A stretch of 64,000 bases of DNA from Hydrolagus colliei (GCA_035084275.1 CM068771.1:5084001-5148000), one strand, 5' to 3'; counted from the stretch's first letter, positions 2,758 through 59,210 are shown. Notes: a model not told the origin generated them from the sequence alone. Numbers and translations are program-made.

Positions 2758-5700
2758 CTGCAAATCAAATCATGTGCATTCAAAATAAAGTGCTGTTCCA
2801 ACGAATCACTTTTTATTTGAACTGTTATAAAGAGTTAAGAGATTAAGTGGATTAAGGGATTTGGGCCAAATATTAATGAGTTGCATTTGGAGGGATTGGA
2901 GAAGAGAGTTCCAAAACTTCATGGTGTAGTGACTGAAAGCATGGCGAATGATGGGGAAGCGGAGGGGACAAGAGACAAGCAGCAGGCTAGAGCCAGCTAG
3001 ATAGAGGCAGCAGGTAGTGTAGTGGGTGGAAAGTAGCTTGGGGTTGCTGGCGGAGTGGGATGGGGGAGGCTGTGGGTAAGATACTACTTCATGAAGGGAC
3101 AACAATCCATTCTGTGCTGAGGGAAAGGGTAGCAAGGACTGGTGTGATGTGGGTAAGGAGTTTAGTATGGGTGAGTATATTAGAGTGGCGTAGTTTGGGA
3201 GTTGTAGTTAGTGGGTAGTGGTGCTGGGGAGACCGATGAAACCTAAATTATCACAGATATAGTGGGAAAAGAATAGGTTGATATACAATTTCTATTTCTG
3301 TTAATATCAAGGTGGAAATTTGTTTATAGCGATTGTTACTTACTCCATTTCAGAACTAGTGTATAGAGTATTAGAACACCAACCAAATAGACAATGATTG
3401 AGATAGTAGTCACAACTGTCAGTGAGGAGAATGGAATCTTACACATCTTCACTGTAGACAGAAACACAACGGTCTGAATTACAAATTAAATAAAACATCA
3501 AACGATGTTTCCCCCTCAAAATGTACAGTCAATCCACTTTACAATGTATTCTGTGCAGTGCTTTAAGATGTCTCGAAAATGTGATAAGGTGCTATATCAA
3601 ACGCAAGGATTCTGACTAAGTTTGTCAAGCAGGGGGGGCAAGCGGAGGAGCACGATAGGAGGATATTGGGCACTTATTGGATACCAATAGCTCAGTTGCA
3701 AGAGCACTCAGGGTTCAATTCCCGACAGGCAAAAGATTGGGGAAGTTCCTTACTCCACTGCCTCAGTTTACCTAGTAATAAGTAGAAACCCAGTTGTTGG
3801 TCAATTGGTGGATCACATTTTCGGGGGTAATAAGAAAGAAAGATATGTCTGAGATCCAAATGTGAAAGTTCAATATTTTTCACTTATTTCAAAATACTCA
3901 CTGTTCCGTACTGCTGTATGAATTTGGATAGTTGTAATGCACACAGCAATTAATCCGTACCCTAGAATAATATTGCGATGAGCTGTTATGAAAAAGAATT
4001 GAATAAACCATCAGAAAGCAAATAGGAATGGAGTACAGGGGTCAGCATTTAACAAATGAGAGCTAGGCCATTTAGGAGTAAAATCAGGAAGCATTTTTTC
4101 CAGCAAAGGGGAGTGTAAATCTGGAACACCCCCAAAAGGCTGTGGATGCTGCATCAATTCAAATTTTCAAGACTGAGGTAGATAGATTTTTGGTAGGTCA
4201 GGGAATCAAGGGATAAGGAGAAACAGGAAACAGCTTTGGAGTCGAGGTACAGATCAACCATGATCTAGTAGATGGTGTAACAGGCTTGAGGGGCTGAATG
4301 GCCTTCTATGTTCCAATTACATGCTTCGGATACAACAACAATAAAAGTATGTTTGTAAAGTACACTTAAAACAACAACAAAATTACATTTATAGAGTGCC
4401 TTTCACATCGGGAGGATGTCCCAAAGGGCTGAACAGTTAGGGATCAAGTATGGGGGCAGGGTTGGGTGAGGGAGGGTAGTGGGTAGGAGTTCAATTAAAG
4501 GAATGGTCAAAAAAGACGGTCTTCAGTTGGGCCTTGAATGAGGTAAGAGAGGGAGCAAAGGGATTATGGGATGGAGTCTCAAAGCCTGGTGACAGAGAGG
4601 CTGAAAGCCCAGCCACCAATGGTACGGTGGGTTGGACAGAAGATATGGAGCAGTCTGGATCTTACTGAGTGAAGGGATTAGACAGGTTGGTAGGTGGTCA
4701 ACATGTCAGAGAAAGAAGGAGAAAGAAAGGCTATGGGAGGCCTTGAAAGTGAGGACAAGATCCTGAATGAGATTCTCTGAGGGACGTGGAGCCAGTGGAG
4801 CCGAGCAAGTGTGTGGGTAATGGGGGTTGCAGAGCCTGGTGCAAGAGAAGACACAAGCTGCAGAGTTCTGGATGATCTGCAGCTTGTGGAGGGAAGAGTT
4901 GGGGAGGCCAATGAGGAGGGAGTTTCCACAGTTGCGTCTTGAGGTGACAAATGCATGTATGAGAGTTTCAGCAGCCTGACGGGTGAGGCAGTGGCAGAGT
5001 CAATCAATGTTGCTGTTCAGGGAAGGCAGAGCAGGTCATGTCATGGATATGGGGAGAAAGGACAGTTGAGGGTCAAACAAGATACCCAGATTTCTGACTG
5101 GCTTGATGAGGTGGAGTGTGCTACCATGGATGACGCTACCAGAGCCTGAGGTGTAGAGGCACTGGCATGAGCCAATCATGAGGGCATCGGTCTTGCTGAC
5201 ATTCAGATGTAGAAAATTGGCTTTCATCCATGATTTGGTATTAGACAGACAGTCTATCAGGATGCCATTTTTCAGAATATTCCAGGTTACAGTAAATGAG
5301 TAATTTGAGGTTCAATAGCTTGGAAGAACCACCCATTTGGGATCTAAGGTTCCCTAAAATTCCCACTATGATGGTACACTAACCCATACAGAATCCATTG
5401 CTATCAATATCTGTATTATTGTTTTATTATTATTTGTATCGCATCAAGCGACTACTAGAAGGCAGACTAGATGGATTTTTTTTAAAAAGATCTCGGAATG
5501 CCTTCTCATTGCCCCGTCCTCCCCATCTTCAAATACCACCACCTAAGCACCTATGTTTTTGATGATGCTTTTGGTCACTTCCCCAGTTCCACTCCCCTCA
5601 GCTCATCGTCAGCCACTGTAAAGTGCTTTGACATGCTACCCCGCATGGAGGACGCTACACGAATGCAAGTTGTTGCTGTTATTGTTGTATCTTCCTATAT

Positions 5701-8700
5701 TGAAACTCAACCATGAAAATAACTTACTTTTAGTTACCAAAAACGAACGTTTTAGGTGAGTTTCAGGGCGGATGTACAAAAAGACGATGTAGGAAATCAT
5801 TGTTATGACGGCAAGAAATATAAATCCTGAAAGAACTCTGTATGTTACAGTAAATCCTAGGAAAGAAGAAAATAAAGATTAAGACTGAAATAGACAGAAT
5901 GCAAAAATAGAAGTTCTAACAACCACAATTACAACTTGGATTTATATAGCACCCTCCACGCCAAATGGTGTCGCAGAGTGCTTCACAATAGTGGAGCCTG
6001 GTGATGAGCCAGGGGGAGGGAAAAGGTGACCGCAATAGGCACAGTCAAACAGAAAGGTCTTCAGACACAACCTGAAAATGCGAAAGGAGGGTTGAGGCAA
6101 AGGGATTGAGGGAGGAAGTTTCAGAGTTTTGGGGGCATAGTGGCTGAAGGCATGAAGGCATGGCTGCCAATGTTGGAGCGGAGGATTCGGGGGACAAGGA
6201 GCAGGCCAGAACCAGTAGAGCAGTGGATGTCAATACTGCTGTGAGGAGAGAGATTAGGGAGGTAGGCGGGTGCAGATGTGGAGTTCTAAATATATAATAC
6301 ACAATCAATTCCTATTTGCCAGAACAAAGGTTATTTCTAGTCATTTTATTAGAGTGGAGTCCTGTAGAGCAGTGATTAGGGCCTTGCAAGCGAGAAGACT
6401 CAGGTTTGATCCCTGGGCTTCGTGAAACCTATGTCATGGTTCCTTACTCCATACACTTCTGTTTACCTGAGGAGGAATGTAAATAGGAGTGAAACCTTGG
6501 CACCTGACAAAGAGCCAGGAAATAATAATAATCCTTACATTTGCTTTAGTGCCTCAACTAGGGTCCATTGATATGGAAATTTTCCGACATCGATATATTG
6601 GTTGGCTCACATCGATATATACCGATATCTCCGGGGCTTTTTGCACTGCTCGTGAGCGCGCATTCAGAGGTGTGCGGGCATTCGGAGGTGTGCGCGCATT
6701 CGGGGTGCGTGTGCATTCCATGCTCTAGGCCCAGGAGGTTTGCAATGCCGGCGACAAGGTAAGTTAAAAAAGTTTGCTTTATACCTATATATACCGATAT
6801 ATCAATATATCGCTGGACACAATATACCGATATTTGTGATATATTGATTTTTTTCATATCGAATTTTTCAATATATATTGATATATTTGAATTTCCAATA
6901 TCGGCATATCGATATGAAAAATTATACTGATATAACCGATATATCGATATATTGCCAGACACTAGCCTCAACACATCTTTGAGACATCTCAAAGCGCTTC
7001 ACAGAACATACTATCAAGTAAATTGACTGTATATTTTGTGAGCGAAGTGCAGCAGCCAATTGCACACAGCAGTGTCCCACAAACAGTCGTGGATCAAAGT
7101 GATTAATTTATTACTTTTTTTAATGGAATTATTATCCTGGAAAAACGATCTGGCAACCGACCAATAATCAGGTTCCTACTTACATGGGCATATGGAGTAG
7201 GAAACTTGCCCAACATGTCATTCTGCTGGGAATCAAAGCAAACCAGGTCTCTCGCTGGCAAGGCAAGTGCTCTAAGCTGCAGGATTCCTGTATGTAACCA
7301 CCGTTCAAATTTAAATATGACAAAATCAAAACAAAACTTACCTTTGTCTATTACACCCAGAAAAGATGCAGTCAACGTGCAAATCAAGGCGAGCATTTGA
7401 AAGAATACACAAACAGCAGTCAATTGCACATGGCGTTTGTAAACTATGAATAAAACAAATTACTGAAATTACTTTATGAGAAAATCAGTCTATTATGTTT
7501 CAAACTAAGGCCTATCTAAATGCTTAAAATTCAAACACTTGCATACTTTATGAACTTCTATTATCTTCTCAGACAAAAAACATCCATTACCTCTATATTC
7601 CAATAAGGCAATGAAGATTATGTATACTGATGCTACCAAAGATAATAAATTGCTGATCAGTGCAATGATGAAGGCAATGAGAGTTTGTTTATGAACTATC
7701 AAAATCCCTTAAAGAGAAAACAAGTAAACAGATGTGAATATACTTTAATTTAGTTCAGGTTTAAAAAAAATGTCAAACAATACGTATACTACAGACAGGC
7801 TAGTATGCAAGTAACATTAAGCAACAAAATTAAAAGCAAAATTCTGGCTGAATACAACAATAACAACTTGCATTTATATTATTTAGTAGGGTCCGTCGAT
7901 ATAGAAATTTTCCGATTTAGATATATCGATGGGCTCATATCGAGATATACCGAAATACCGATATTTTCGGGTTTTTCGTACTGCGCATGCGCGCGGCGTG
8001 CGCGCATTCAGGGTGCACGCGCGTTCCAGGTGCGTGCGCATTCCGGGTGCGTGCACATTCGGGGCCTATCTCCTCAGGAGGTAAATATCTTTCTCTCTCT
8101 GTGTCTCTCACTCTCTCCATCTCTGTGTTTTTCTCTCTGTGTCTCTCTCCTCTCTCACATCCACCCAGTCTCCACCCCGCCGCCGTCCTTCTCTCCTCCC
8201 GCCGCCTTTCCTCTCTCGCACCCCCCACCCCCGTTGTCTCTCTCCCCCCCCACCCTCCCCAGCCGTCTTTTTCCCCCTCCCCGTCTCTCTCTCCCTCCCA
8301 CCCCCCGCCGTCTCTCTCCCCCACCCAGCCGTCTCTCTCCCACTCCCCCCAGCCGTCTCTCTCCCCCTCCCCTCCCCCCCAGCCGTCTCTCTCCGCTCCC
8401 CCCGCCCCCAGCCGTTTCTCTCCCCCTCACCTCCCCCCACCCCCAGCCTTCTCTCCCCACCCCTACCCCTTGCATACCTGTATATTGTATTCTAGGACTA
8501 TGAATACAATATGGCAGCTTTGCACCTCTGTCTGTGCATTGTGTATAGAGATGAGCATTCTGGGTCTTGTAGTTCAGTGTGCACGCATTCCGATTTTTTA
8601 CCTCGTTATATCGACTTTTTGATATATCGATATTTTTGAAATGCCTATATCGGCGTATCAATCTGAAAATTATATCGGGTTTTAGAGATATATCGATATA

Positions 8701-11700
8701 TCGCTGGACCCTAGTATTTAGTAGGTCAATGTAAGGTAGGTCACTGTAAGCATGTTCAAAGATGAAGGCCTTCAGGCTCCTGAATATGGGGAAGGAGGGG
8801 GCAAGGTGAAAGAGAGTGCTCCAGAGTTTGGGAGCAAAGTGTCTGAAAGCGTAGCCACCGATGGTTCCATGGATGGCACAAGGAAACCTGTGAAGCAGAG
8901 GTATAAATACCTGGAGTGGAATAAATACATGTGAAGCACTTGGACACATTTCAATGTTGTAGGTATTATATTAAATGTAAGGATTATTGTTGGGTGGAAC
9001 CTCTGTCACAGCATAAATTTTCCAGACTGAAGTAGATGGAAATACATTAGCTAAACGTAACGAGGGATATGGGGCAAGGGTGGGTAATTGGAGTTGAGGT
9101 ACCGATCAGCCATGATCTTATAGAATGGCAGAACCTATACTGTAGGCTCGAGGTTTGCTAGTTCTGTACGGCACTGAAAATATTCTACACTGAATATTAA
9201 ATAATATCTATTGATTATGTCTATATTGAGCACTCATATGAATACAAATATTGTATAGGTTATAAAACCTACCATCGACCAAAAGTTGAAGTGAGTTTCT
9301 GTTCATGCTGACGTGATTTCTCACCATGCAGGTATACTTGCCACAATCTGTGAGTCTTAGATTTTTAATTGTCAGTGTACTATTGTTCAATATTACATCC
9401 AAATGGTTGTCATCGAGTATCATTTCATCGTTTTTCATCCAAGACACGCTATAAAACATTTTGTTGAGGGCAAGACAACTCAGCACCACAATATCACTCA
9501 CAAAGGCGGGATCCTTAAGAATCAATGGAATTGGCAATCTTTCTGTCGGAGAGAGAAAAGTGAGTGACCAATTTGTTGGTAATAACATTTGATGCAAGGC
9601 AATCTAGTGGTAAATTCATTCCTTTACTAACTGCAGAGAGTGGGGAGGGGTGGGGGAGATATTGCTGTCTGCAAGAAGGGTTTTAAGACTTATCTTGAAG
9701 GAGGCCAAGGGGGGCATAAGGCTGTGGAATGTAGTTCCAGAGGGTGAGGGCAGCATTGTTTGCTGTTGTAGGCCCGCCAATGATAGGACGAGCAAGGTGG
9801 GGGACATGAAGCAGGTTGGAGTCCGCTAAGCAGAGTTAGGGTTGAAGGCAAGGATGAGGATTTTCAAATCTATCTTCTGGGGGATTGGAAGCCAGTGGAG
9901 CCGGGTGAGTAGAGGAGTAAAAGGATCACAGAGCTTGTATTTACCATGAGAGAAAAACAGAACATTTCCTCAATTAGTTGGTATTGCATTGGAGTCAACA
10001 TCCACCTCAGGAACATTGGATGTACAGTTTACCCCAAAGTAAAGCAGCTGAAATTTATTTTTAAATGTTCCTACACTAATCTGTCTCATACCTCACCTTT
10101 TTGTTTTGCCAAGGAAGCTATTCTCTATTTAAATTCCAAGCACTTTGGGATATTCTCCCAACATGAAAGGCACTGTGTAAATGTAATTCATTGTACAGTA
10201 AAAGCTCCTTTATCCAGCACCCTCGGGACCTGACCAGTTAATTAAATATGCCGGATATTCGAGAGGCAAGTTACCAAAAATCATATACAAAAAATTAACT
10301 TATTTTAAAACAAACCAAATTAATAATAGATTAAATAATAATAGAATATTGTATGAATACTTACCAATAAAGCATTCCAGCACACTTGGTAAAATGATAA
10401 GTGAAATAAAAATTCTGTTATGTTTAATAAGTGCACATTGCAAGCATGCGCAAAGTGAGCATACTTACAAGTGTCCCGAATGGCTCCAGTATGAGATCCG
10501 TTGGCTGGAATGCTGAATTGTATTGAGAGATACCGGTTGGGGTTGACATTCCGGTTGGTTGGGTGCTGGATAAACAAGCTTTTACTGTAACTAGAAATAG
10601 TACTCACCTTCAATTATCAACTCTGTGTAGACCTCATTTATTTCAGTAACCATGGTTAGACGATCAAGCTTTTCTGATCTTTTACAATATAGACCACTGT
10701 CCTCTCTTTCTAATTGACTCAATAGAAGAGATCCATCACTTATATTTGCTCGATGCCTGAATAGGTGATTCAGAGAACCAGTACCATAACGGGTAATGTA
10801 GCTTCCGATTATTATCTCGCTTTCACGTATAATTTGTTTCCATTGCACAAAATCAAGTGTTTTGAGAGTACTGTTTGTGAACCCAGCAAGTAAAACTGAA
10901 GAGCCCAGTTCACCATAAATGGTTTTTCTATATTCAACCTTCTTCTTTTCTTCTGAAGAATCTGCAAGAAATACAATTATAGCAATATAAGTGTTAACTG
11001 TTATTCAAACAGTCAAAAAAATCCACCAAAAAATTTAGTTTCAAGCAGCAAAGAATAACAGATTCATAATAATACTTAGAATTGAATTGTATATTGTCCA
11101 TTATCATGACTAGAGACACCCCAAGGTGCTTCGCAGAGTTTAATGTAAAGTGAATTGACTGTACATTTTATGGGTGAAACACACCAGAAAGTTGTACACA
11201 GCTGTGTCCCATAAACAGTCATGGATTGAGTGACTGGGGATTATTGTCCCTGGAAAAGCAATCCTCTGATCAACTGATAACTGGGTTCCTGCTTAGTGTT
11301 GGGTAAACAGAGGTCGTGTGGATTAAGAAAACTTGCCCAATATTGCACACGGGAATCAAACCCAGGTCTAACCATGAAGTTACAGGACTCCACTACAACA
11401 ACAACAACAACAAAATTACATTTGAATAGTGCCTTTCACGTCAGGAGGACGTCCCGAGGTACCAGACAGTCATTGTTTCGGACCCGAGTTAGAGTGAGAG
11501 GTGGGGATTTGGGGTGAACGATGGCACCGTCAAAGAAGGGGGTCTTGAGATGAGACTTGAAGGAAGACAGGGAGGGCACGAGGCAAAGGGACTGCGGGAT
11601 GGAGTTCCAAAGGCTGGGGCAGAGTGGCTGAAGGCTCACCCGCCAATGGTGGGGCGGGTGGGTTGGGGGACATGGAGCAGGCCAGAGGCCTGCTGAGTGG

Positions 11701-14392: not shown

Positions 14393-14870
14393 TCCCGCTG
14401 CCTGACTCCAGGGCGATGGTCAAGTCACAAGATGGCGGCCTAACGGCAACTCAGCTCTTTAACGGCAACAAGTTCAAAATGAAAGACAAACAAAGCGGGC
14501 GGCTGGCGCCGCTGCCCGGCTCTCTGGGCCCCGCCCCTCCCTCCCTCCCTCCCGCCCGGGGGCTATTCGCTCGGTAACGCTGACTCCGTCCGTTCCGCCG
14601 CCTTTATCCCGGCTCCGCAGCCGCTTCCCCTTCGCCTCTGGTAACGGTTTCAGTTTGTCCGCCTCCCGTCCCCGCGCTCACTCACTGCGCAGGCGCCGCA
14701 CTTCCCTTTCCCGCGCTCACTCACTGCGCAGGCGCCGCACTACCCTTTTCTACGCTCACTCACTGCGCAGGCGCCACAGCTCCGTTCCCGCACTCACTCA
14801 CTGCGCAGGCGCCGCACACTAATAATGTTCAGTGCGCAGGCGCCGCGCCTCCTTTTAACCCCACAGCAAA
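14330..14870 (-). promoter_or_regulatory. CpG-island promoter/5' UTR of gene A with YY1 site and five NRF1-like motifs
   Basis: CAAGATGGCGGC at 14428-14439; TGCGCAGGCGC x5 between 14681 and 14846 at ~38 bp spacing; GC box near 14530. Confidence 0.7.
14350..14392 (-). CDS. Gene A exon 1, signal peptide [14 protein letters not shown]
   Basis: First ATG in a CpG-rich block; hydrophobic leader; CAAG|GCAAGT GC-type donor, phase 1. Confidence 0.72.
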
Positions 14871-15536: not shown

Positions 15537-15577
15537 TCATTTCCTGAACTTTTTGATGGGATGCTTCCATTTCTGCA
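15537..15577 (-). CDS. Gene B terminal coding exon (tail MQKWKHPIKKFRK*)
   Basis: 41 nt; paralogous to gene A tail. Confidence 0.78.
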
Positions 15578-18500
15578 CTGCAAACGAAATCAACACACTT
15601 GGTGAGCCCTCAACAGACATAATTGGAAGATTACCCATGTGTAGATAATAATAATCCTTGCATTTTATGTCTGTATTTAATGTCAGGAGGATGTCTCCAG
15701 ACATTTCACAGTATTGGTCATCAGTGTAGGAACTGTATATATTTGCAAGTAAAATGCCACTACACTCTGCTGGAAAGAAATCTGGCAATTAACGAACAAC
15801 AACAAAAGCACATTTACAGAGTGCCTTTCACCTCGGGAGGACATCCCAAGGTGCTAACAAGTGGATTTGTATTGACTGCTAGATGTTCAGAAGCATATGG
15901 AGTAAGGAAACTTGCCTACAGTTTTGCCTCCACTGACTTTGACTGAGAAAGCATCTCTAACCTAGACTGAGGAAGCATCGCTTCATACGAAGCATTGTGA
16001 AGACATGGAACTCTCTATTTGCCAAAACACTGTAAATGCAGCTGCATAATTATTACTTACTGAACTTTCCAAAAAAGACAAAGAATACTCCAACAGCAAC
16101 CACATACACCACCACAGCAACTGTGACTAAAAGTGCTAGCTCTCCAATAGGAACATTGCATGCCGTCACTATAGGTAAAAATATGAACATTTGAATTATT
16201 TAACATTTGATATATAAAGAGAGAAAGCAACAAACACAAATTTAGAAAATACAGAGATTAAAGAGGGATTTTTTTTTAAATGCAGATTTTATCACAGATC
16301 ATAGTAATTTATTAGAAACAAATTAAAGTAATCTATGGAGTCCTGTAGCTCAGTGATTAGATCATTTGCCTTGCAAGTGAGAGACATGAGTTCATTTTCT
16401 GGCAGCATAAAACCTTAGGTAAGTTTGCCTATGCCACACATCTGATAATAAGCTCTCAATAAAAAAAATGTGGTCATTCAATCCACGAATGTTCTTGGGT
16501 CACTGCTGTGCAGAACTGGCTGCCGCATTTTGCCTACAACTATACAGTCACTTCACTTGTTGTGTATATTGTGTGAAGCACTGAGATGCCTTCTTGGAGA
16601 CATGAAAAGTGCTATATCAAATCCAAGGATTGTTGATAAGAGTAGTAAAGGAGGAATTAGAAACTTTGAAGTAGACTTAGAATGGAAGAAATATACATCT
16701 TTTCACCTAAATTATAATGCTAATAGTAATCATAATAATAATACTTGCATTTGATATATTAATTTATCACATCAGTGATATATCTCAACGTACTTTGCAG
16801 AATATACTGTACTGCAAAGTGGATTGACTTTCTTGCGAATGAAATGCTGCAGCAAATTGTGTACAACAGTGTGCCCCAAACAGTCATGGATTGAGTAACC
16901 ACATTTTTTTTGGAGGGATTATTAACCCCAAAAAGCAATCTGTCAATCGACTAACCTGGTTCTTAGTTGCTGCTATGGATACAGAGGCATGTGGAATAAG
17001 GAAACTTGGCTAAGATTTGTCCCTGTCCGGGAATCAAGCCCGGGTATTCACTTGCGAGGCAGATACACACACACACACACAAACACACAGACATGCACAC
17101 AGATACACATATACACAGTGATTGCAACACACTCACCATTTTTTTTGGCTTGATGAATTGGGGCACCTGAAATTATTATGGTTGATAATCCATATCCAAG
17201 AATAATAATGCGGTGGCCTATTAGTAAAAGAAACAAATCTGAGGACATAGGAAAATTGCCACAGTTGGTTGGTTGAATTGTGTTGCCAACTCAGCTCCAA
17301 GGGAACCCTGCTACATCCACCCCTCCACCATCAGAGGGCTATGCTTTAGAGTCTCCAAACCAAGCTGAGAATCCCATCTACACATGCAAACCCCAAAGAT
17401 AGATTCTTTGAATAGAATGCACTCTCTCTCCCTGGAGGGATGCATCCTGCTAACCTAATAACATATTAGGTTCAGGTTGGTAAGAACCAAGGCTTGATTT
17501 CCTAGCTGGCATGCTTCTCCCCCTGCTCATCCAGCTTACCCTACCCATTAAGGATTTGGCTTCCAGGGTTAACAGGAGCTGAGATGGAGGATTCCCAGCC
17601 ACTAGTGACTGATCTGCCTTTCCAAGTCCGGCTGTGCTGTCATCAGCGATGTCCTAGGGTCAATTTTCCAACAAACTTCAAGGGGACTTTAAAACATATT
17701 AATATCGGAATGTCTGCCAGGATTCCATCCCTGTTCCAACAGTATATATAAGGTGAGCCAAGTCCATGAGATTATAAAAGACAGCAGTTGTTGGGAACTC
17801 TCGGGATGTCGGGCAGCATTTATGGATAAAGGAAAGTGAATCAACGTGTTGGGTCCATGATTATCAGTTGTTTGACATGTGGTATCCCAATATCCCAATA
17901 TACTGTATCCTGAAATAGTACTTTCCAGCAGAAATCTATCTAATTTGTTCTTGAAAACAAACAAAACTAAAAAATAATTCCTCTTCAACAGCAATTTCAG
18001 GTGAAGAGCTTTCTTTAGCCTATGAAGTGAGAGAAAACAGTGACCAAATTCAACCATTACTAGGTTAACTTACGCTTGTGTAACAAAAAGGACCTTGTCA
18101 GTTCAGTTTCAGGACGCAGGAAGAAGATGGCAATGTAGATCATTACTGCAACAGATATAATACAGCCAATGCCTGAGACAATTCTGTATTCAAATGAAAA
18201 CCCTGGAAAAGGAAGAAATTGAAGAATGTGGTGAATAGAGAATGTGGAACAACAACAACAACAAATCATATTCACACTGCGCCTTTCACATCAGGTGGAC
18301 ATCCCAAGGCCCTGAACAGTCAAGGGTGAGCACCCAAACTGGGGGTTCCAATCAGGAGAGGTGGAGGGCAGGGATAGGAGGGTGACTGAATGTGCAACCG
18401 AAGAGGAAGGTCTTGAGATGGGCCTTGGAAGAGGAAAAATAGGCGAGGTAAAGGATCTATGGCAGTGGTTTCCAAACTGTGGGACGCACCTCCCTTGTAG

Positions 18501-32737: not shown

Positions 32738-32836
32738 AATAATAATAATGATTATTATGATAATAATAATCATTATTATCATAATAATAATGATTATTAT
32801 CATAATAATTATAATCATTATAATAATAATAATAAT
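32738..32836. repeat. (AAT)n/(ATC) microsatellite (expanded SINE tail)
   Basis: Direct reading. Confidence 0.9.
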
Positions 32837-45176: not shown

Positions 45177-45204
45177 TCAGGTGGTCGGTAAAGACGCTGA
45201 GACT
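45177..45204 (-). CDS. Gene C candidate terminal exon (RVSASLPTT*)
   Basis: Strong acceptor gttttcttttcaaacag, compatible phase 2; no paralog support. Confidence 0.4.
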
Positions 45205-48200: not shown

Positions 48201-51200
48201 TTACATGGACTTTCAAAAGGCATTTGACAAAGTGCCACATGAGAGACTTATTATGAAATTAAAGGCCCATGGCGTAAAAGGGACAGTGGCAGCGTGGATC
48301 CACAACTGGCTGCGAGACAGAAAGCAGAGAGTTGTAGTGAGCGGCTGTTTTTCAGATTGGAGGGAAGTGAGCAGTGGTGTGCCACCGGGATCGGTTTTGG
48401 GACCATTGCTGTTTGTAATCTACATCAATGATCTGGACTTGGGTGTACGGAGTACAGTTTCCAAGTTTGCAGATGACACTAAGTTAGGGAGAATAGTAAA
48501 CAGTGAGGAGGATAGTAGCCATCTGCAAGAGGATATAGACAAATTGGTAAAGTGGGCAGACACATGGCAGATGAAGTTTAATGCAGAGAAGTGTGAGGTG
48601 ATGCATTTTGGGAGAAGAAATGAAGGGAGGCAATATAGGCTAGATAGTACAATTTTAAATGGTGTAAAGGAACAGAGAGACCTGGGGATTTGTGTTAGTG
48701 ACTCGTTGAAGGTGGCAGGACAGGTAGACAAGGCTGTTAAGAAGGCATATGGGATACTAGGCTTTATAAATAGGGGTATAGAGTACAAAAGTCAGGAAGT
48801 GCTGACTAACCTCTATAGGACTTTGGTGAGGCCTCAGCTGGAATACTGTGTTCAATTCTGGTCACCACACTACAGAAAGGATGTGAAGGCATTGGAAAGG
48901 GTACAAAGAAGATTTACTAGGATGGTGCCCGGATTGAGGGACTTCAGCTATGAGGAGAGGCTAGATAGGCTAGGGTTATTCTCTCTGGAGCAGAGAAGAT
49001 TGAGGGGAGACCTAATAGAGGTTTATAAGATCATGAGGGGTTTCGACAGGGCAAATAGAGAAAAACTATTTCCACTCGTGGGTGAATCTGTGACTCGTGG
49101 TCACAGATTTAAAATAGTTTCAAGGCGCAGTAGAGGGGAGCTGAGGAGAAATTTTTTCACTCAGCGAGTTGTTCGAATCTGGAATGCATTGCCTGAAAAG
49201 GTGGTGGAGGCTGATTCGATAACAACTTTTAAAAGGGAATTAGATCTTTATTTAGGGAGAACAGGTCTATTAGGCTATGGGGAGCGGGCAGGGCAGTGGG
49301 ATTGAATCGCTCTTTTCAAAGAGCCGGCACAGACTAGATGGGCCGAATGGCCTCCTTTTGTGCCGTAAAATTCTATGATTCTATGATTCTATGATTCTAT
49401 GATTCTATGACTGTGGGATGGAAGGTGGGGACAGAGAGGCTGAAGGTCTGACCACCAATGGTGGAGTGGGCTGGGCAGAGGATGTGAAGCAGCTCAGAGC
49501 CTGCCAAGCGGAGGGAGTGAACAGATGCGGGGTCACAGAGGTATGGAGGAGGAAGGCTTTTGAGGGTCTTTGAGGGCAAGGATTTTGAACTCCGTCCTCT
49601 GGGAGTTGGGAGCCAGTGGAGCCTGGTGAAGGTTGGGAGTGATAAGAGTCGCCGAGCACAGTAAGTGAAAGGACACGAGCTGCAGAGTTCTGAATGTCAA
49701 GTAAGAAAACTTGACAAAGGATTTCCTTATCAGCTCAGACACTGTGATACTCTTTTAAGACTAATTACATCTTCAAGATGACTCAGTATGCTTCACAGTG
49801 TACATTATCAAGATAATTGACTCAATAAGATAAAACTGAAGTCCCCCAATCCTGATATAATGGTACAGAGAAGATTTACAAGAAGTATTCCAGGGATAAG
49901 GGATTTCAGTTGTCTGAAGTAAATTTTGTGGGCGAAATTGCGCAGAGTAATGATCCACAAACAGTCATGGATTGAGCGACCATAGTGGCATATATGGAGT
50001 AAGGAAACCTGTCCACAATGTTGCTCTGCGAGTGCTCTATCCACTGGGCTACTGCAGATATCTTGTACTTACACAGTGTGAAGCAACATATCAACACTGC
50101 AGCAATTACGACACAGATGATAATCGTAGGGAGAAGAACTTTTTGTAAGTCTTCATTCAGACTGCATCCTTTATCTGCAAGCAAAGACATTAATACATAG
50201 TCAAAATATTACAGATAATAATAGTCCTTCCATTTGGCCTTAACGCAACCGCAATAAATGACATTTACACAGCAACTTTCATGTTAGGAGGGCATCCCAA
50301 AGTGCAGGACAGTGAGTTATTCGGTCCAGAGCTGGGGTTGGATAAAGGATGAGAAGGTCACAGAGATGGGGAGGAGCATTGAAGGGAATTTGATGAATGG
50401 GGGGGCCTGCGGAGCTGGGTGGGGTGATGATAGAATCATAGTATTTTACAAAAGGGGACCATTTGGCCCATCTTTGAGAAGAGCTGTCGAAACCAATCCC
50501 ACTCAACCACTCTCTCCCCATAGTCCCTGAAACAGGGAAAAGGTGGGCAGGTTGATAAGCCGAGCCATATTTGTGATAAAAGCATAGATTGCATTGCCTG
50601 AAAAGGTGGCGGAGGCCGATTCGATAACAACTTTTAAAAGAGAGGTAGACATATATTTTGGGAGGACGGGTTTGCGCGGTGATGGGGAGAGAGAGAGCCG
50701 GGGAGTGGGATTGAGTTGCCCCTTCCAAAGAGCCGGAACAGACTCGATGGGCCAAATGGCCTCCTTTTGTGCCGTAAGATTCAACGATTCTATGAAGGAC
50801 TAGGCTGCCTGAGGGGAGAGGCAGAGCTGGGCGATGGCAGGTGGGGGGGAAGGCAGAGTGGGTCATGGGATGCATCACATAGTTGAGATGTCTCAAAGAT
50901 GTCTTCACAGAATACACAGTACAGAATATACTGTACAAGTGGAGCGACTGTGTGTATTCCACCTCTGCCTCGTGACGCTTTGGAATTGGGAAAAGATGCT
51001 ACGCAATAAAGCCGTCTGAGCTGTTACTTACCAGCTGCCTTCAGGACCCAGAGTGGTGGAGGGTTTGTGGAGGGGGTGGTGGAGGGGAGGCTGTGAATGG
51101 CCTTCTATTACGCATAGAAAAGCGAGGCACCATTTGACTAACAAATGGGTTCCTGTGTAATGCCTGGTAGACAGAGAGGTGTTTGTGTGGGAACAGCAAT

Positions 51201-54200
51201 ATCACTTCTCCCTGCTGAGAAACATTAGCCCAAATGTTCCCCACCGAGTCGAAACTCTGTGAACACAATTCTTGGGAGGGTTGGGAGTGAGTTGATATCT
51301 TGCCCATCCAGTCTAGCAAGTCATGGAGTAAGGAAACTTTTGTTTTGCGAGCGAGTTTTGACAGCCTTTTTTCGCTGTCAGTCACACACTCACCTATCAG
51401 TGGATCCGAACCCTTTTTTTTTCCGGGACGCAAAGTAACCACAACAAACAGGGCCTCGCGACCTTCAATTGTCTCAAAGCGCTTCACAGAATATACTGTA
51501 AAGTGAAGTGACTGTATATTTGTGGGCGAAACGCGGCAGCCGATTGCGCACGGCAGCATTCCCCCACACACAGTCGTGGATTGAAAACGACCAATTTTAT
51601 TATTGTATTTTATCGGGAGGAGAGATTATTTTTAGGCGTGTGGAGTAAGGAAAGTTGCCCAAGGTTTCGCCCTGACCTGCCTGGATTCGAACACAGGTCT
51701 CACGTTTGTAAGGCTCTCACCACTGAGTTCAATTGCAAGTCGAGCGCTCCGACCACTAAACTACAGGACTTTGGTTGAAACCTTTCATTCGAGACTTTGA
51801 GCTCACGGTCGGAAAATTCATCTTTCCCAACTGAAATGTTAAATAAACCCTTTCACATCAGAAATGGGGAGCCATTCACATAGTGCGTTCGGCCAATTCT
51901 GCACCAATTTTATGGAGTCAAACCTTCTCTGTTGCAGAAATTCATCAGAATTTCCAATCAGAAATTCACATAGCGCGTACGCAATAAAGCCTTCTGAGCT
52001 GTTACTTACCGGCTGCCTTCAGGACCCTGATCAACAATACTAAGGAAATCACGACGACCACAAGGTTACTGAGTGGAGCTACAACATCCCTTCCGACACG
52101 ATAGACTGTCAGAGAGAAGAAATAATAATCAGCATAATCCTTCTGTTTAATATCGGACCTCATTACATCGTTTTGATAGATCGATCGATCGATTGATTGA
52201 TTGATTGATTGATTGATGCCCTGGTTAACGAAGGCATGTGGAGCAAGGAAACTTGCCGAAGGCATTGCCCTGGCCGGGAATCAAACCCAGGTCCTCTGAT
52301 TCGCAAGGCGAGAGTGTTTTTACCCCCTGCGCTGCCGAAACACTCGTGCACGCATACATCACCTGACGGCTGGACTATGGAAACTCTCTCCTAGTCGGCC
52401 TCCCCAGCTCCTCCATTCACAGGCTGCAGGCCATCCAAAACTCTGCAGCCCGTGTACTATCCCGCACCCGCCTCCGCGACCACATAACCCCCACCCTCGC
52501 CCGTCTCCACTGGCTCCCCATCCTCCAGAGGATCGAGTTCAAGATCCTCGTCCTCACCTACAAGGCCTTACACGGCCTTGCCCCGCCCTATTTAACCCAT
52601 CTACTCTCCCCCTACACGCCCACCCGGACCCTCCGTTCAACAGGACTTGGCCTGCTCCAAGCCCCCCGCCCGAACCGCCCCACCATCGGAGGCCGGGCCT
52701 TCAGTTTCTCCGCTCCCACCCTATCCCTCAATCCCTCCGTTTCATCTCCTCCCTTTCCTCTTTCAAGGCCGGTTTGAAGACTTTCCTCTTCGATCGTGCC
52801 TTCTGTTCCACCCCGAACTCTTTTACCTCCCCTTCGTGTTTCACCCCTTCCCAAACACTCCCCTCCCAGCTCGGGTCACACGCCTCCTGTGCAGCGCCTT
52901 GGGACGTCCTCCCGACGTGAAAGGCGCTCTATAAATGTAATTTGTTGTTGTTGTTGTTGTTAATCACTATAATATATAGTGATCAACCGAGCATTTAACA
53001 TCGTGGTTAGTGCACTTGCCTCGAAACACGACAGCGTTTTTGTTGGATAATTAAAACAAACGTACTGTTATTTTTGTGCATGATGGAGAAATAGTGCGTG
53101 CAACACTTTTTGATGTCCAAGGTGGATATGGTGACCAAGATTATCAGGAAGGCCACAAACACCAGAGAAACCACTAATATTTCAGAAGGACCTGGGGGAA
53201 CAAGAGACAAAGCACTCGGTCATTCTTCAGAGTTCTTTGCAGAACCAGTAAAACAAAACACAAAATCAAACATTTCAGTCATTTTCAGTCCACGACTTTT
53301 GTGGGGGACGCTGCTGTGCGCAATTGGCTGCCGTGTTTCGCCCACAAATATGCAGTCAATCAATTCACTTTATAGTACATTCTGTGAAGCCGCTTTGAGA
53401 CGTCGGTAAGATGTGAAAAGCTGCTTTATCAAATGCAAGGATTATTATTATTATTATTATTTGTGTCGGAAAAATTTCTGTACAAATAGCACTCAAACAG
53501 AAGGTTTTATTTTCTCATCCATAAATGCATCTTTTTAAAAAATAAAATGCACATATTCAAATGTTACACGCACACGCACGCACGCATGCACGCATCTGTT
53601 TCCCTATCAGTAGGTAAACAGAGGAATGTCGAAGACCCATTTGTGTTACAAATCTGTTTTTACACTTGCACAACTGCTTTCTTGCTTCATACGTACAAAT
53701 ATAAAGAATTAATCACCTTGGCTGCTGGTGGGAGAGATTGCTGTGTGCAGTTCCCTGCTTACTTTCACCCACCAAAAAAACTCAGTCATTCAAATTTCGA
53801 ATATATTCTGTAAAGCGCTTTGAGCGTTCCCGATGAAAGGCACCATAATAATCCTTACGGAGAGCAGGAGAATTGACCGTATATTTGTGTTTTTCACGTC
53901 CTCTAGACCAGTGGCTTCTCAACCCTTTTCAGTAATGTACCCCCTTGTTAATTTTCAACATTATCGTGTACCCCCCACCCAACCACACACACACAGACAC
54001 ACACCACCCCACTCATTCCAATTGCATTTTATGACCAAGCTTTTCCTATATCACAAAATAACTAGCACATACACAACCAGGGGAATAACAATTAAATATA
54101 CAGTTTGGAAAACGCTAAATAAGAGAGCGAAATAAATCAATGTACCCCCCACCTGTACCCCGTGGAACTCATTTCGTACCCTCTGTACCCCTGGTTGAAA

Positions 54201-57200
54201 ACCGCTGATCTCGATGTCTCAAAGCGCTTCACAGAATATACTGTAAAGTGAATTGACTGTATTTTCGTGGGCGAAATGCGCACAGCAGCGTCCCACAAAC
54301 AGTCGTGGATTGAAAACGACCAATTTTTTTTTTTTTTTTTTGAAGGATTATTATTAGGTGTGTGTGTGTGTGTGTGTGTCTGTGTGTGTGTGGAGAGTAA
54401 GGAAACTTGCCCAAGATTTCACCCTGACCTGGATGGATTCGAAACACAGGTCCCACGCTTGTAAGGTGATTGCTCTAACCACTGAGCTACTGGATTAAAC
54501 AACATCACAACACACCCATTTGGTCATTGAATTTCTACTTACCCCAAACATTCAGTTGGAAAAATAATGCACAGAATAAAGCGATCAACGACAAGATGGA
54601 CAGAATATGGTGTCTGAAGAATATCTTCCCCTGGACTGTAATGCCTAGCAAAGCAATTTAGATTTGTTAGTTACATTTTCATTTCCTTAAAAAATTCGCT
54701 GTCAACTGTAAAATAATATTTCAACCACATAGCCCCAACTCAGCCAAAACCCTAGTCCACGCCTTCATCAACTCCCAACTCAACTGCTCCAATCCCATCT
54801 TCACTGATCTCCCCAGCTCCTCAGACAGATGCTATCTGAGGTACAACAACAACAATAACAACTTTGATTTATATATCGTCCTCCACTCCGGACGGTGTCT
54901 CAGAGTGCTTCACAATAACGGAACCTGGGGACGAGTCAGGGGTAGGGGGGGAGAAAGGTGACCAACGGCACGGTCAAAGGGAAAGGTCTTTAGCTGAGAC
55001 CTGAAACTGGGAAGAGAGGGGTGGAGAGGCGAAGGGAGTGAGGAAGGGAGTTCCAGAGCCTCGGGGCGTAGTGGCTGAAGACACGGCCACTGATGGTGGA
55101 GCGGAGGATTTGGGGGACATGGAGGATGCCAGACCCAGAGGAGCGAAGGCAATGAGATACTGTGTTTTGGAAGCGTATATATTGAAGGTATATTGGCCTT
55201 AGAGTGGGTGCAACGTAGATTCACCAGAATTAAACCAGGGTTAAATTACGAGGAAAGATTGTGTAAACTTGGCCCGTGTTTCATTTAGAAGGTTGAGTTT
55301 GATCTAATTGAGGTTTTCTAATCGATGAAGGGATTTGATCGGGTAGTTACAGAGAAACTATTCCATCTGGTGGGTGGTGGGCGGGAATCAAGAAAGAGGG
55401 GGGTGTTATCTTAACACGTAAAAGCCAGTTTTAACACAAAGGTCGTTGGTAATCTGGAACTTGCTCCCTCTCTCAAAAGTTTATGGATTATGGCTGGATC
55501 CATTCGCATTTTCAAGGCTGAGTTGGATCGATATTCGCGAGGTCAGGGTATTCCAAGGAATATGGAGTAATGGCAGATAAACAGAGTTGGGGTACAGATC
55601 AGCCATGATCTTAGACCAGTGGTTCCCAACCTCGGGTCCCGACCCAAAAATCAGGCTCGCGGGGCGTCCTCAGTAGGGTCGCGAAGGGTCATCAGAAATA
55701 TTTTTTTTTTCTCGCTGGAAAGTGCCCAAGGCGACACCGCCAACCAATTTGTGTGAGAGACCGTACTATTGAGTTAGAAACATAGAATAAATAGAATCTT
55801 ACGGCACAAAAGGAGGCCATTCGGCCCATCTAGTCAATGCTGGTTCTTTGAACAGAGCAACTGAATCCTAAACTCAATTTCCTCGTAGCTGAAATCCCTC
55901 ATTCCTGGTGCCATCCTAGTAAATCTCCTCTGCACCCTTTCCAATGCCTTAATATCCTTCCTAGAGTTCCACTGAGTCCACAAAAGAGACGGAGATATGG
56001 TCTTGCCTGAACTTCGCTTCAGTCGCTTCAGTCGCCCCCTAAGGGTCGGGAGGACCTGCTGCTGGCCAATTTAGGGTTTGCAGCAACAAAAAAGGATTGG
56101 GAACCACTGTCTTAGACAAAAGGAACGGCCTCAAGGCACTGAAAGGCCTCCGCATTTTCCGATCTTCACTAAGTTACACTACACACAAGTTAGTCGCAAA
56201 AGATTCCGAATTCTTCCTCTTCAATTGCGCCTTTGGTCACCCGCCTACCCCCCAGCCTCCCCGCCCTCCACCCTTCCTGATCCCAACCCCTAGCTTGAGT
56301 GCAGATGCCAGGACTGCCCAGGTCCTTGGGAACCGCTTCATAACATGAAGGTGAATGTAATTTTTCGTCGTTGTTGTTCAAACACTTACCGAACTCATCC
56401 TTGGTTGATTGATTGCAAAGGAATAGAATTGCAAAGATGGATATCAGTGCACACAACAGGGCGAAGGCTGATCCTGCAAGTGTGACCTTATGAGAAGCCG
56501 TCAGACCTTAAGCAGAGAGTAGTACGCACACAGTCATTCCAAACGAGCAACAGGACTCCACAACAACAGCAACAACTTTGATTTATATAGCGCCCTCCAC
56601 TGCGGACGGCGTATCAGAGCGCTTCACAATAAAGGATCCCGAGGCCAAGCCAGGGGGAGGGGGCGACAAAGGTGACCGAAGGTGCGGTTGAAAAGAAAGG
56701 TCTTTTGCCGAGATCTGAAACTAGGAAGAGAGCGGGGGATGGGGGGGTGGGGGGGAGGTGGGGGGGCGCGAGGCGAAGGGAGTGAGGAAGGGAGTTCCAG
56801 AGCCTTGGGGTGCAGTGGCTAAAGGTATGGCTGCCGATGGTGGAGTGGAGGATTCAGGTGGAACAAGGAGGAGGTCAGATCCGGAGGAGCGAAGGCAACG
56901 GGTGGTGTGTTGGGGAGAGAAGAGGTCAGAGAGATTTGGTAGGTGGGGTTGCAGAGGAGTGGAGAGACTCGAAAACAATAAATGACTCACCATAAATGAG
57001 GAGATTGTACGAGGTGTTTGTCTGTCCGAGTATGTTTCCCATGACACACGTGTAAATCCCACAATCCTCTTTTTGGGCCTCACCAATCACCAATGATCTG
57101 TTGTTGTCCATCAGCCAATGGCGTCGATCACCATCAAGCTGCCTTCCTTCTCTCATCCAGTAAGTATTTGTGGCTTCCCCCGTCAGCACCTTACAGCTCA

Positions 57201-59210
57201 GCTCAACATTGGTTCCCAAGTAACTCGAGTTTGGGACAATAAATGGTTTCGACAAAGGAACTGCGGTGGTGGGTTGGGTAGGGTTGGGTTGGGTTGGGTT
57301 GGGTTGGGTTGGGTTGGGTTGGTGAGCAAGTGATGGGAGATGGGAGGAGGTAAAACAGGCAAAAATTACTTATTATAGTAATCCTTGCATTTGATGGAGC
57401 GCTTTTCACGTCTTCTAGACGTCTCAAAGCACTTTGCAGAATAGACTGTAAAGTGAATTGACTGTATATTTTGTGGGCGAAACGCGGCAGCCATTTGCGC
57501 ACAGCAGCGTCCCCACAAATAATTGTGGATTGAAATGACCAATTAATGATAATATTTGGGGGGGGATGGATTATTACTAGGCATGTGTGCGTGTGTGCGT
57601 GTGCGTGTGCGTGTGTGCGTGTGGAGTAAGGAAACTTGCCCAAGGTTTCGCCCTGACCTGCCTGGGTTTGAAACGCAGGTCTCAGGCTCGTAAGGCGAGT
57701 GAGTGGCTCTAACCACTGAGCCTCAGGACATTGGGACTTGAACCTACAGCCGTCTGACTCAGCGGCGAGAGCGCGACCTCCGACCCGGGCCGACAACACA
57801 GAAAAGCTACTCACTGAAAACATCCAGGTGCACAGTCCTCTCCAAGCCATTTTCCAGATTGACTTTGATGTGGTACTTTCCGCTGTCACGAGTCTGTAGG
57901 TGTTTCAGCAGAATCGATCCGTGGGACCTGTCGAACTCGACACGGTTTTTGTACAGCTCGTTTACGGTGAGGGCCTGGCTCTCGATGTAGTAATCCAGGA
58001 TGGACAAGTTGATGTCCGCGTAGCTGAAAAACCACTGAACGACATTTTTGTTGATCAGCTCCTCCGTGGTGAAACCCGGCAGCCGAACCGAGTCGTTGAG
58101 CTTGGAAACCAGTCTCGTTTCGCTCTGCTTGCCCGCTGCGAATTGGGATCCGTCTGAAAGAAATGACAGCAACAACAACAACGGGAACAAACGTATGATT
58201 GGCCGGCGCTATTCCCGTCGGGAGCATGTCACGGGGGATTTGAAACGGTCTCAGTGAGTCAATCCACGGCTGTTTGTGGGGGGCGTGCTGCGGTGCGCAA
58301 TTGGCTGCCGCGTTTCGTTCTCCCGCAAATGTGCAGTCAGTTCACTTCACTGCAATATTCTGGGAAGCGCTTTGAGACGTCGATAAGACGTGAAAAGCGC
58401 CGTATCAAAATGCAAAGATTATTATTTTTATTATTATTATTGCTATTGTTATTATTATTATTATCTAGTGTTGTCAGGGTTGGAGGGCAGGGCGTGTTGG
58501 GGTAGGAGGGTGACCAACAACAACAACTTGGATTTACATTGCGCCCTCCCTCACTCCACGCCAGTTGACGTCTCAGAGCGTTTCACAATAACAGATCCTG
58601 GGCCCGAGCCAGAGGGGGGGGGGGGGGGGGTGGTGGGGGTGGGGGGGGTTGGGGGGGGTGCGGAGAAAGGGTGACCGAAGGCGTGTCTTCGAGACCTGAA
58701 ACTAGGAAGAGAGAGGGGGTGGGGGGGGAGGGGAGGGGAGGGGAGGGGAGGGGCGGCGAGGCGAGGCAAAGGGAGTGAGGAAGGGATTTCCAGAATTTCG
58801 GGGCGTAGTGGCTGAGGGCACCGATGGTGGAGCGGACGATTCGGGGGAGACACGGAGGTAGACCAGAACCGGAGGAGCGAAGGCTGTGTTGGGGAGAGAC
58901 ACCCACACACGTGATTCCTTGGGGGGGGGGGGGGGGGGGGGGGGAAAGCAGGGCCCATGTGCCATCAGTCAGTCGCCTTCAAGGCAGACAGGAATTAAAC
59001 CTCCCGACGTGAAAGGCGTTCTCTGAGTGTAATCTCGTTGTTCCTGTTATATCTCATAGCTCTAACTACGGCAGTGAAACATTTCGACCCTCCCGGGAAT
59101 CTCTCGCGAGCCGCGCGCACTGACCAGAATACGATGGGACTCACTCAGAGCTTACCTTGTGAAGAGAAGACAGCGAAAATCAGGAAGAGGAACGTCCCGG
59201 GGGAAGACAT
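45177..59210 (-). CDS. Gene C: more diverged IgV-IgC2-5TM paralog with longer tail, ~432 aa
   Basis: join(minus) 59210-59156, 58153-57815, 57260-56991, 56506-56390, 54644-54543, 53191-53066, 52105-52010, 50174-50073, 47080-47017, 45204-45177 = 1299 nt, open; last exon tentative. Confidence 0.8.
45383..45520. mobile_element. hAT Charlie-type MITE (138-bp deletion derivative)
   Basis: CAGTGGTTCCCAACC TIRs; TSD CTCTAACC/CGCTAACC. Confidence 0.82.
45799..46105. mobile_element. hAT Charlie-type MITE, same family
   Basis: Internal sequence shared with 55617-56109; degenerate left TIR. Confidence 0.75.
46137..46990 (-). mobile_element. Young L2 LINE 3' fragment
   Basis: ORF 46173-46991 [19 protein letters not shown]...LHWLP...[20 protein letters not shown]; tail gtgaaaggcgctctataaatg(ttg)n. 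Confidence 0.9.
47017..47080 (-). CDS. Gene C cytoplasmic exon ([21 protein letters not shown])
   Basis: cattacag acceptor, gtaagt donor; phase 1 in, phase 2 out. Confidence 0.65.
47571..49410 (+). mobile_element. CR1/L3 LINE, 5'-truncated, 570-aa open RT frame, inserted in an older L2
   Basis: ORF 47593-49305 with FADD but PPGS instead of PQGS; (TTCTATGA)n tail; near-identical to the 28.9-kb copy. Confidence 0.95.
50073..50174 (-). CDS. Gene C TM5 exon
   Basis: 102 nt; [34 protein letters not shown]; Cys at 4th codon as in A/B. Confidence 0.8.
51051..51939 (+). repeat. ~890-bp local duplicate of 41610-42509
   Basis: High identity by eye across unique and SINE sequence; flanked by 49-bp direct repeats. 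Confidence 0.9.
52010..52105 (-). CDS. Gene C TM4 exon
   Basis: 96 nt; [32 protein letters not shown]; gtaagt donor. Confidence 0.78.
52325..52960 (+). mobile_element. Young L2 LINE 3' fragment (inverted near-copy of 46137-46780)
   Basis: Same sequence in opposite orientation. Confidence 0.9.
53066..53191 (-). CDS. Gene C TM3 exon
   Basis: 126 nt; [42 protein letters not shown]. Confidence 0.8.
53909..54207. mobile_element. hAT Charlie-type MITE
   Basis: CAGTGGCTTCTCAACC...GGTTGAAAACCGCTG; left flank CTCTAGAC. Confidence 0.7.
54208..54490 (-). mobile_element. SINE2 copy with hAT MITE inserted in its tail
   Basis: Family consensus; tail continues at ~53850-53908. Confidence 0.82.
54543..54644 (-). 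CDS. Gene C TM2 exon
   Basis: 102 nt (same as A/B TM2); [34 protein letters not shown]; gtaagt donor. Confidence 0.78.
55617..56109. mobile_element. hAT Charlie-type MITE inserted in a CR1 3' end and carrying a CR1 tail fragment
   Basis: Perfect TSD TCTTAGAC (55609-16 and 56110-17); TIR CAGTGGTTCCCAA. Confidence 0.88.
56390..56506 (-). CDS. Gene C TM1 exon
   Basis: 117 nt; [39 protein letters not shown]; HKxTL motif as in A. Confidence 0.82.
56991..57260 (-). CDS. Gene C IgC2 exon
   Basis: 270 nt; VELSC...TYWMREG...[24 protein letters not shown]. Confidence 0.92.
57365..57722 (-). mobile_element. SINE2 copy in gene C V-C2 intron
   Basis: Family consensus. Confidence 0.85.
57815..58153 (-). 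CDS. Gene C IgV exon
   Basis: 339 nt; SVRLPGF...VVQWFF...[27 protein letters not shown]. Confidence 0.92.
59156..59210 (-). CDS. Gene C exon 1, signal peptide [18 protein letters not shown]
   Basis: ATG, hydrophobic core, CAAG|gtaagc donor, phase 1; ends Q-G like the A/B leader. Confidence 0.78.

Follow-up and report, generated by a model that had tools for sequence, protein, structure and literature searches.

To our knowledge, CD47 is the only well-studied immunoglobulin (Ig)-superfamily protein that is built on a bundle of five transmembrane (TM) helices. In addition to the ordinary pair of its Ig domain (Cys41-Cys114), CD47 contains a long-range disulfide, Cys33-Cys263, which joins the IgV domain to the membrane domain, and the loss of which weakens ligand and antibody binding and abolishes signalling (PMC10902115). 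The human gene comprises 13 exons, with the tails supplied by exons 8-13 (PMC10902115); five exons then remain for the five helices, from which we infer that each helix of CD47 is encoded by an exon of its own. A second set of described proteins, the CEACAM, CD2, CD48, CD58 and SLAM families, begins at the N terminus with a V domain lacking the canonical disulfide, to which a C2-type domain is joined, and is carried on a single membrane pass or on a glycosylphosphatidylinositol (GPI) anchor. Here we describe a window of 64,000 nucleotides from Hydrolagus colliei (GCA_035084275.1 CM068771.1:5084001-5148000; positions are counted from its first letter), which contains a tandem cluster of three genes of an unnamed family of cartilaginous-fish surface proteins. 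An earlier note on this DNA, which gave the CD47 facts correctly (a Cys33-Cys263 bond from the Ig domain to the loop before TM5; PMC10902115), had proposed that two extra cysteines in each of the three genes form a comparable tether. The comparisons reported below support, short of proof, a CD47-like design in which an Ig domain is locked onto a helix bundle, combined here with a CEACAM-like two-domain ectodomain and present as a multigene family in cartilaginous fishes.

A tandem cluster of V-C2-five-helix genes

Comparison of the translated segments of the three regions recovered seven collinear conserved blocks per gene, and the splice sites were then read from the DNA. The resulting core models define three paralogous genes on the minus strand (A, 10961-3344; B, 24131-16061; C, 58153-50073), each consisting of a V exon, a C2/I-set exon and five exons that encode a single helix apiece. 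In all three genes the splice sites are clean AG/GT sites and every intron is in phase 1, and the exon sizes are nearly identical from gene to gene (Table 1). The span over which the tether had been proposed begins and ends on exon boundaries, namely the end of the TM5 exon of gene A (3344) and the start of the C2 exon of gene C (57260).

A profile of the V exons of A, B and C, searched against 1.8 billion representative proteins, retrieved full-length V-C2-five-helix relatives only in cartilaginous fishes, in genera including Callorhinchus, Mustelus, Heterodontus, Heptranchias, Stegostoma, Chiloscyllium, Scyliorhinus, Cetorhinus, Carcharodon, Pristis, Hemitrygon, Hypanus, Mobula and Rhinoraja. 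A word-index homologue search with the long open frame and the C2 exon as region gave no match; by word-index search the family alignment returned only four proteins, and a single ray protein was the more productive query. Two Callorhinchus milii genes, LOC103189488 (P0004) and LOC103189490 (P0015), share the domain order and the Cys pair of the window genes, and their exons match the window at the modelled positions in tblastn searches. They are only 63-76% identical to the window genes: gene A is 70-76% identical to LOC103189488, and gene C is 63% identical to LOC103189490 over the full core. In a phylogenetic tree gene A groups with LOC103189488 and gene C with LOC103189490, each with 100% support. 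Genes A and B fall in one fully supported clade together with genes from Callorhinchus, Mustelus, Heterodontus and Hemitrygon, and the pair formed by C and LOC103189490 is placed outside the main elasmobranch group. By full-length similarity and shared exon structure (BLAST, tblastn and the tree), the three genes are members of a chondrichthyan V-C2-5TM family.

The relatives are annotated in databases either as uncharacterised or under automatic labels (HEPACAM-like, CEACAM-like, SLAMF-like and even VEGFR3), and about 20 database genes carry misleading automatic names of the HEPACAM-like, CEACAM-like or VEGFR3 kind. In the literature searched we found no published description of this family or of LOC103189488 and LOC103189490. 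Pfam searches with ten family proteins recognised Ig domains only, with the helix region matching no family. Among relatives such as P0027, P0113, P0145 and P0093/P0183 the number of domains varies, with V-V-C2 and V-V-V-C2 arrangements, and one Mobula gene apparently encodes about twice the usual number of helices; both the ectodomain and the bundle therefore appear to expand by exon duplication.

Two extra cysteines and a putative disulfide lock

Each of the three C2 domains contains, besides its canonical B- and F-strand cysteines, a third Cys in the EF turn. Read on the minus strand the motifs are TDCGKY (9351-9334) in gene A, RHCGWY (22579-22562) in gene B and EDCGIY (57069-57052) in gene C, with the Cys at the x of D/H-x-G-x-Y-x-C. 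A further Cys is encoded by the TM5 exon, whose first two bases, in all three genes, complete a codon that opens with the final base of the TM4 exon. Once this split codon is joined, the TM5 segments begin with MKMC (A, the unspliced frame of which reads VKMC), VTAC (B) and DKGC (C), and the Cys occupies the fourth codon in each case. Both cysteines had been singled out in the earlier note as shared positions, that of TM5 against otherwise low identity, and the comparison bears this out: pairwise identity among A, B and C is 26-45%, and in an exon-wise alignment of 408 columns just 63 (15%) show the same residue in all three. The core proteins together contain 28 cysteines. Four columns, those of the canonical C2 B and F strands, the EF turn and the TM4-TM5 loop, account for the 12 that are three-way conserved, and the remaining 16 all fall outside such columns. 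Among Ig proteins that do not belong to the family, a Cys at x was seen in none of 76 x-G-x-Y-x-C motifs, the usual residues being E, A, S and T. Four apparent non-family proteins with an EF-turn Cys were rejected as they turned out to be truncated family members.

From sequence comparison and predicted structures we infer that an intramolecular disulfide probably joins the EF-turn Cys of the C2 domain to the Cys of the TM4-TM5 loop. In the arrangement that we propose, a V-C2 ectodomain of the CEACAM/CD2/SLAM type would stand directly on a five-helix bundle with a short cytoplasmic tail. The extra EF-turn Cys would lie at the membrane-facing end of the C2 domain, where it would most likely be disulfide-bonded to the Cys of the short extracellular loop between helices 4 and 5. 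Such a bond would hold the C2 domain on the bundle, giving the entire ectodomain a fixed orientation and a mechanical coupling to the helices, as Cys33-Cys263 does in CD47.

The topology of the proteins agrees with this arrangement. An N-terminal Ig ectodomain with glycosylation sequons is followed by five helices, and the loops between helices 1 and 2 and between helices 3 and 4, as well as the segment after helix 5, are rich in lysine and arginine. The outward loops comprise three residues between helices 2 and 3 and seven residues between helices 4 and 5, with the Cys in the middle of the latter. AlphaFold models were obtained for the Callorhinchus orthologue of gene C and for a ray relative, as stand-ins for the window proteins, from an alignment of 19 sequences in each case. 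Both models have a predicted local distance difference test score (pLDDT) of 76 and a predicted template-modelling score (pTM) of 0.61, and both show five long helices; the Cys-bearing loop has a pLDDT of about 70-80. The sequon-bearing N-terminal ectodomain, the lysine- and arginine-rich loops on the other side and the topology of the models together place the TM4-TM5 loop outside the cell, in agreement with the earlier note. In the models the C2 domain is seated on the bundle, its strand G ending six residues short of helix 1. Both contain lone beta-bridges which involve the Tyr of a conserved Y-G-L linker and the residue after the loop Cys; the models suggest that the Cys loop packs against the linker from C2 to helix 1. 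In the Ig fold the membrane-facing end of a C2 domain comprises the end of strand G together with the A' segment and the EF turn. As a separate observation, gene B has an N-V-T sequon (16161-16169, minus strand) directly before the loop Cys, which, if used, would confirm that the loop faces outward and would place a glycan beside the proposed bond.

The loop Cys could alternatively find its partner within the bundle, for example a Cys where helix 2 ends on the outer side or one of the first extracellular loop, in the manner of a G protein-coupled receptor staple, in which case the EF Cys would be free or have some other role. Candidate partners do exist, in the form of a Cys-Trp near the outer end of helix 2 in many elasmobranch members of the C type and of a Cys in the first extracellular loop of P0027. 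However, these candidates are not conserved in position, the outer end of helix 2 lacks a Cys in A, in C and in Callorhinchus P0015, and the only cysteines that are invariant or nearly so throughout the family are those of the canonical pair, the EF turn and the loop. We consider pairing within the bundle highly improbable.

The count of the remaining extracellular cysteines is also informative about possible partners. The V domains of A, B and C are without the canonical B-F Ig disulfide, and only A, like its Callorhinchus orthologue, retains the F-strand Cys. Genes B and C and P0015 are left with exactly the EF Cys and the loop Cys as extra cysteines; in P0015 the extracellular cysteines are only residues 156, 200, 205 and 374, which correspond to the canonical pair, the EF Cys and the loop Cys. 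In gene A an upstream exon contributes another Cys, which is replaced by Tyr in LOC103189488 and which raises the extracellular Cys count of A to six; no exon for a signal peptide was located. The description of the two cysteines as an unpaired pair thus stands for B and C; in A they are not the sole odd cysteines, since the lone V F-strand Cys and the upstream-exon Cys are present too.

Both the EF Cys and the loop Cys are kept in about 22 distinct full-length genes from roughly 15 species, a count that does not represent independent events as the genes of the family are related. The genes that keep both span the A/B-type and the C-type lineages, and the A/B-type clade unites genes of chimaeras with those of sharks and rays; the Cys pair has therefore been kept in a lineage older than the chimaera-shark split. 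The mean column identity of the family alignments is 35-40%; in them three cysteines, those of the C2 B strand, the C2 F strand and the loop, are invariant, the EF Cys is nearly so, and both focal cysteines persist at overall identities of 25-30%. Two genes, sisters from rays, depart from this pattern. In Pristis LOC127585946 the EF turn contains Ser, the loop Cys is kept and a new Cys is present nine residues ahead of the B-strand Cys. It occupies the A' position, matched in Callorhinchus by residue 147, the A' bridge residue of the model, and the A' position and the EF turn border strand G at one and the same end. Hypanus LOC132394532 encodes a V-V-five-helix protein with Arg instead of the loop Cys, and at the expected site of its C2 exon the locus has an ungapped intron of 11.3 kb in which no C2 exon remnant is recognisable. 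Loss of one of the two cysteines alone by an orthologue, which had been named beforehand as the outcome that would speak against a tether, was not encountered: the Pristis change is compensated, and in Hypanus the loop Cys has gone along with the C2 domain. Changes of these two kinds, one compensated and one joint, are what would be expected of a real pair.

These departures also bear on the possibility that both cysteines are functional and engaged in intermolecular bonds, either in a covalent homodimer or in a link to a partner protein. Such bonds would suit the exposure of both cysteines at the membrane-proximal face, as well as the odd cysteines of gene A, which exceed what one internal pair absorbs. 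However, the shift of the EF Cys to the adjacent A' position in Pristis is what an internal pair predicts, two independent bonds need not change together as the C2 domain and the loop Cys did in Hypanus, and in B, C and P0015 parity leaves no extra cysteines other than those of the EF turn and the loop. We therefore regard intermolecular bonding as unlikely. It is also conceivable that no bond is formed, with the two cysteines kept for unrelated reasons or as free thiols, and that their co-occurrence reflects shared ancestry; all the evidence is comparative or predicted, and the genes of the family, being related, do not count as independent events. Against this, non-structural cysteines turn over freely among A, B and C, both focal cysteines have persisted at low overall identity across a clade that unites chimaera genes with those of sharks and rays, and the sole departures are the two described above. 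Exposed free thiols are, moreover, disfavoured in secreted domains. The absence of any bond accordingly appears distinctly unlikely.

Several observations weigh against an internal bond between the C2 domain and the bundle. The partners of the beta-bridges in the models are deduced, and the two models share one alignment and are not independent of each other. In gene A parity does not force the pairing, given its further lone cysteines. Some elasmobranch members have other cysteines, located close to the outer end of helix 2 or within the first extracellular loop, which are possible alternative partners. Finally, the loop Cys is present in two database proteins that have no C2 domain, isoform X3 from Callorhinchus (P0004) and a draft gene model from Scyliorhinus (P0125). 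Should these be genuine products, their loop Cys would be left unpaired; as an alternative isoform and a draft model, respectively, they weigh little.

Relation to CEACAM-type receptors and to CD47

In its ectodomain the family resembles the CEACAM, CD2, CD48, CD58 and SLAM proteins, with a V domain that has no B-F disulfide followed by a C2-type domain. The best sequence matches in the PDB are the V domains of CEACAM, CD48, CD2, CD58 and SLAM proteins, and the best structural matches of the model in Foldseek searches are CEACAM1 (TM-score 0.77 on the target), CD48 and CD58. Unlike these families, which are single-pass or GPI-anchored, the window genes each have five hydrophobic exons, corresponding to the five helices of the two models, and the proteins have the extra Cys pair between C2 and the bundle.

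The membrane-associated part is more reminiscent of CD47. Shared features are an Ig ectodomain placed directly on a five-helix bundle with short loops and a short tail, and an extra Ig-domain Cys at the membrane-facing end combined with a Cys in the extracellular loop before helix 5. In Pristis the Ig-side Cys is 9 residues before the B-strand Cys, practically the same site as in CD47, where Cys33 is 8 residues before Cys41. Each window gene has five helix exons in phase 1, one per helix, and A and B have a tail exon encoding 13 residues; this one-helix-per-exon layout and the short tail exons, shared with CD47, are suggestive only. In contrast, CD47 has a single IgV domain, whereas the window family combines a C2 domain with a V domain that has no disulfide and is CEACAM/CD2-like. 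The tether would start from the C2 EF turn in nearly all members of the family, as opposed to the A' strand in CD47. Unlike CD47, these proteins form a tandem multigene family, seen only in cartilaginous fishes.

Sequence and structure searches did not connect the family to CD47. In ten family proteins the profile of the CD47 membrane domain (Pfam PF04549) had no match at E<=10, and the CD47 IgV profile (Pfam PF08204) gave sub-threshold matches only, in three of the ten (E 0.012-0.08). PDB sequence searches with P0125 or with a profile of the TM5 exon recovered no CD47 chain at E<=10, and a V+5TM profile recovered none among the best 60 of 90 matches, which were mostly Ig domains. Foldseek searches of the PDB and BFVD with the full model gave Ig-dominated lists, with Ig-domain matches only and no CD47 among the 50 matches listed. 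The earlier note had left it open whether its CD47-style lock arose by homology or by convergence: comparison and topology support the lock itself, and descent from a common precursor is unsupported at the sequence level. True homology of the five-helix bundle to the CD47 membrane domain seems to us doubtful. The CD47 loop, Cys-Ile-Pro, is close to the Cys-Lys-Ile-Pro of A and the Cys-Asn-Val-Pro of B; this is a lead and not a test of homology.

If the lock is real, a family of sharks, rays and chimaeras repeats the CD47 plan with a different ectodomain and a different point of attachment, and an Ig domain locked onto a helix bundle would be a reusable design. The family would then offer natural variants with which the function of the lock might be probed, namely an EF-turn tether, an A'-strand tether and a form with neither C2 domain nor tether. 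It would also raise the question of the origin of CD47. Were the bundles homologous, CD47 could be the lone bony-vertebrate survivor of an older group of multi-pass Ig receptors, which the cartilaginous fishes would have kept as a diversified tandem family with CEACAM/SLAM-like ectodomains, and the Pristis variant could represent a stage in the relocation of the tether Cys from the EF turn to its place in CD47.

Exon coordinates, transcripts and neighbouring DNA

Table 1. Exons of genes A, B and C and the assembly gap between A and B
Feature	Position	Strand	Size (nt)	Details
Gene A upstream exon	12252..12581	-		N-terminal extracellular, degenerate Ig-like stretch with one Cys; tblastn 68% identity to residues 2-111 of Callorhinchus LOC103189488 (P0004)
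Gene A V-set exon	10608..10961	-	354	No B-strand Cys; lone F-strand Cys 10686-10684; 76% identical to P0004
Gene A C2/I-set exon	9273..9542	-	270	Canonical Cys 9477-9475 and 9330-9328; EF-turn Cys 9345-9343; generic I-set/C2 in PDB search
Gene A TM1 exon	7591..7707	-	117	Conserved block and splice sites
Gene A TM2 exon	7342..7443	-	102	Conserved block and splice sites
Gene A TM3 exon	5728..5856	-	129	Conserved block and splice sites
Gene A TM4 exon	3902..3982	-	81	Final base A opens split codon ATG
Gene A TM5 exon	3344..3451	-	108	Loop Cys 3443-3441
Gene A last coding exon	2717..2757	-		13-residue cytoplasmic tail and stop; matches tail of Callorhinchus P0004
Gene B V-set exon	23778..24131	-	354	No Cys
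Gene B C2/I-set exon	22501..22767	-	267	Canonical Cys 22702-22700 and 22558-22556; EF-turn Cys 22573-22571
Gene B TM1 exon	21603..21719	-	117	Conserved block and splice sites
Gene B TM2 exon	19648..19749	-	102	Conserved block and splice sites
Gene B TM3 exon	18074..18202	-	129	Conserved block and splice sites
Gene B TM4 exon	17137..17217	-	81	Conserved block and splice sites
Gene B TM5 exon	16061..16168	-	108	Loop Cys 16160-16158; N-V-T sequon just before
Gene B last coding exon	15537..15577	-		13-residue tail and stop; coding end 1.2 kb above assembly gap
Gene C V-set exon	57815..58153	-	339	No Cys; 62% identical to Callorhinchus P0015
Gene C C2/I-set exon	56991..57260	-	270	Canonical Cys 57195-57193 and 57048-57046; EF-turn Cys 57063-57061; 75% identical to P0015
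Gene C TM1 exon	56390..56506	-	117	Splice sites and tblastn
Gene C TM2 exon	54543..54644	-	102	Splice sites and tblastn
Gene C TM3 exon	53066..53191	-	126	Donor GTACGT; least certain boundary of all exons
Gene C TM4 exon	52010..52105	-	96	Splice sites
Gene C TM5 exon	50073..50174	-	102	Loop Cys 50166-50164
Assembly gap (N)	14150..14326			Between gene B last coding exon and gene A upstream exon

The assembly gap lies outside all coding exons and is crossed by no reading frame used here. The segment directly above it (14338-14741) is a 97.5% copy of 31961-32358, which adjoins a tandem array at 31229-31958; because this flank copies DNA beside a tandem array, the gap probably sits in repeat DNA. 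Four more N runs, of 134-236 bases, are found at 60349-61816, in a low-GC stretch beyond gene C. The intergenic DNA encodes a Tc5/pogo-type DDE transposase open reading frame (25265-26389, minus strand) and two copies of a reverse transcriptase of the long interspersed nuclear element (LINE) type (28900-30938 and 47593-49302, both on the plus strand). The segments 29206-31022 and 47569-49386 are 98% identical, and these insertions are therefore recent. A fourth gene copy behind this duplicate was considered and rejected, as the two segments are LINE copies and tblastn finds only three genes of the family.

Two donor sites, written below with a slash at the end of the exon, may be relevant to alternative products of genes A and B. 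The donor after the C2 exon (9267-9272 in A, 22495-22500 in B) is G/GTAGGT and reads on as Gly-Arg-Phe, and the database proteins P0116, P0127 and P0128, from Callorhinchus, Chiloscyllium and Hypanus, stop just after the same Gly-Arg-Phe read-through. Retention of the post-C2 intron may give rise to secreted V-C2 isoforms; alternatively, the gene models of these three proteins may be truncated. After the TM5 exon the donor (3335-3343 in A, 16052-16060 in B) is A/GTAAGTAA, and a message left unspliced there would encode Ser-Lys followed by a stop. The product would be an almost tail-less protein, which recalls the isoform of CD47 that has a 4-residue tail.

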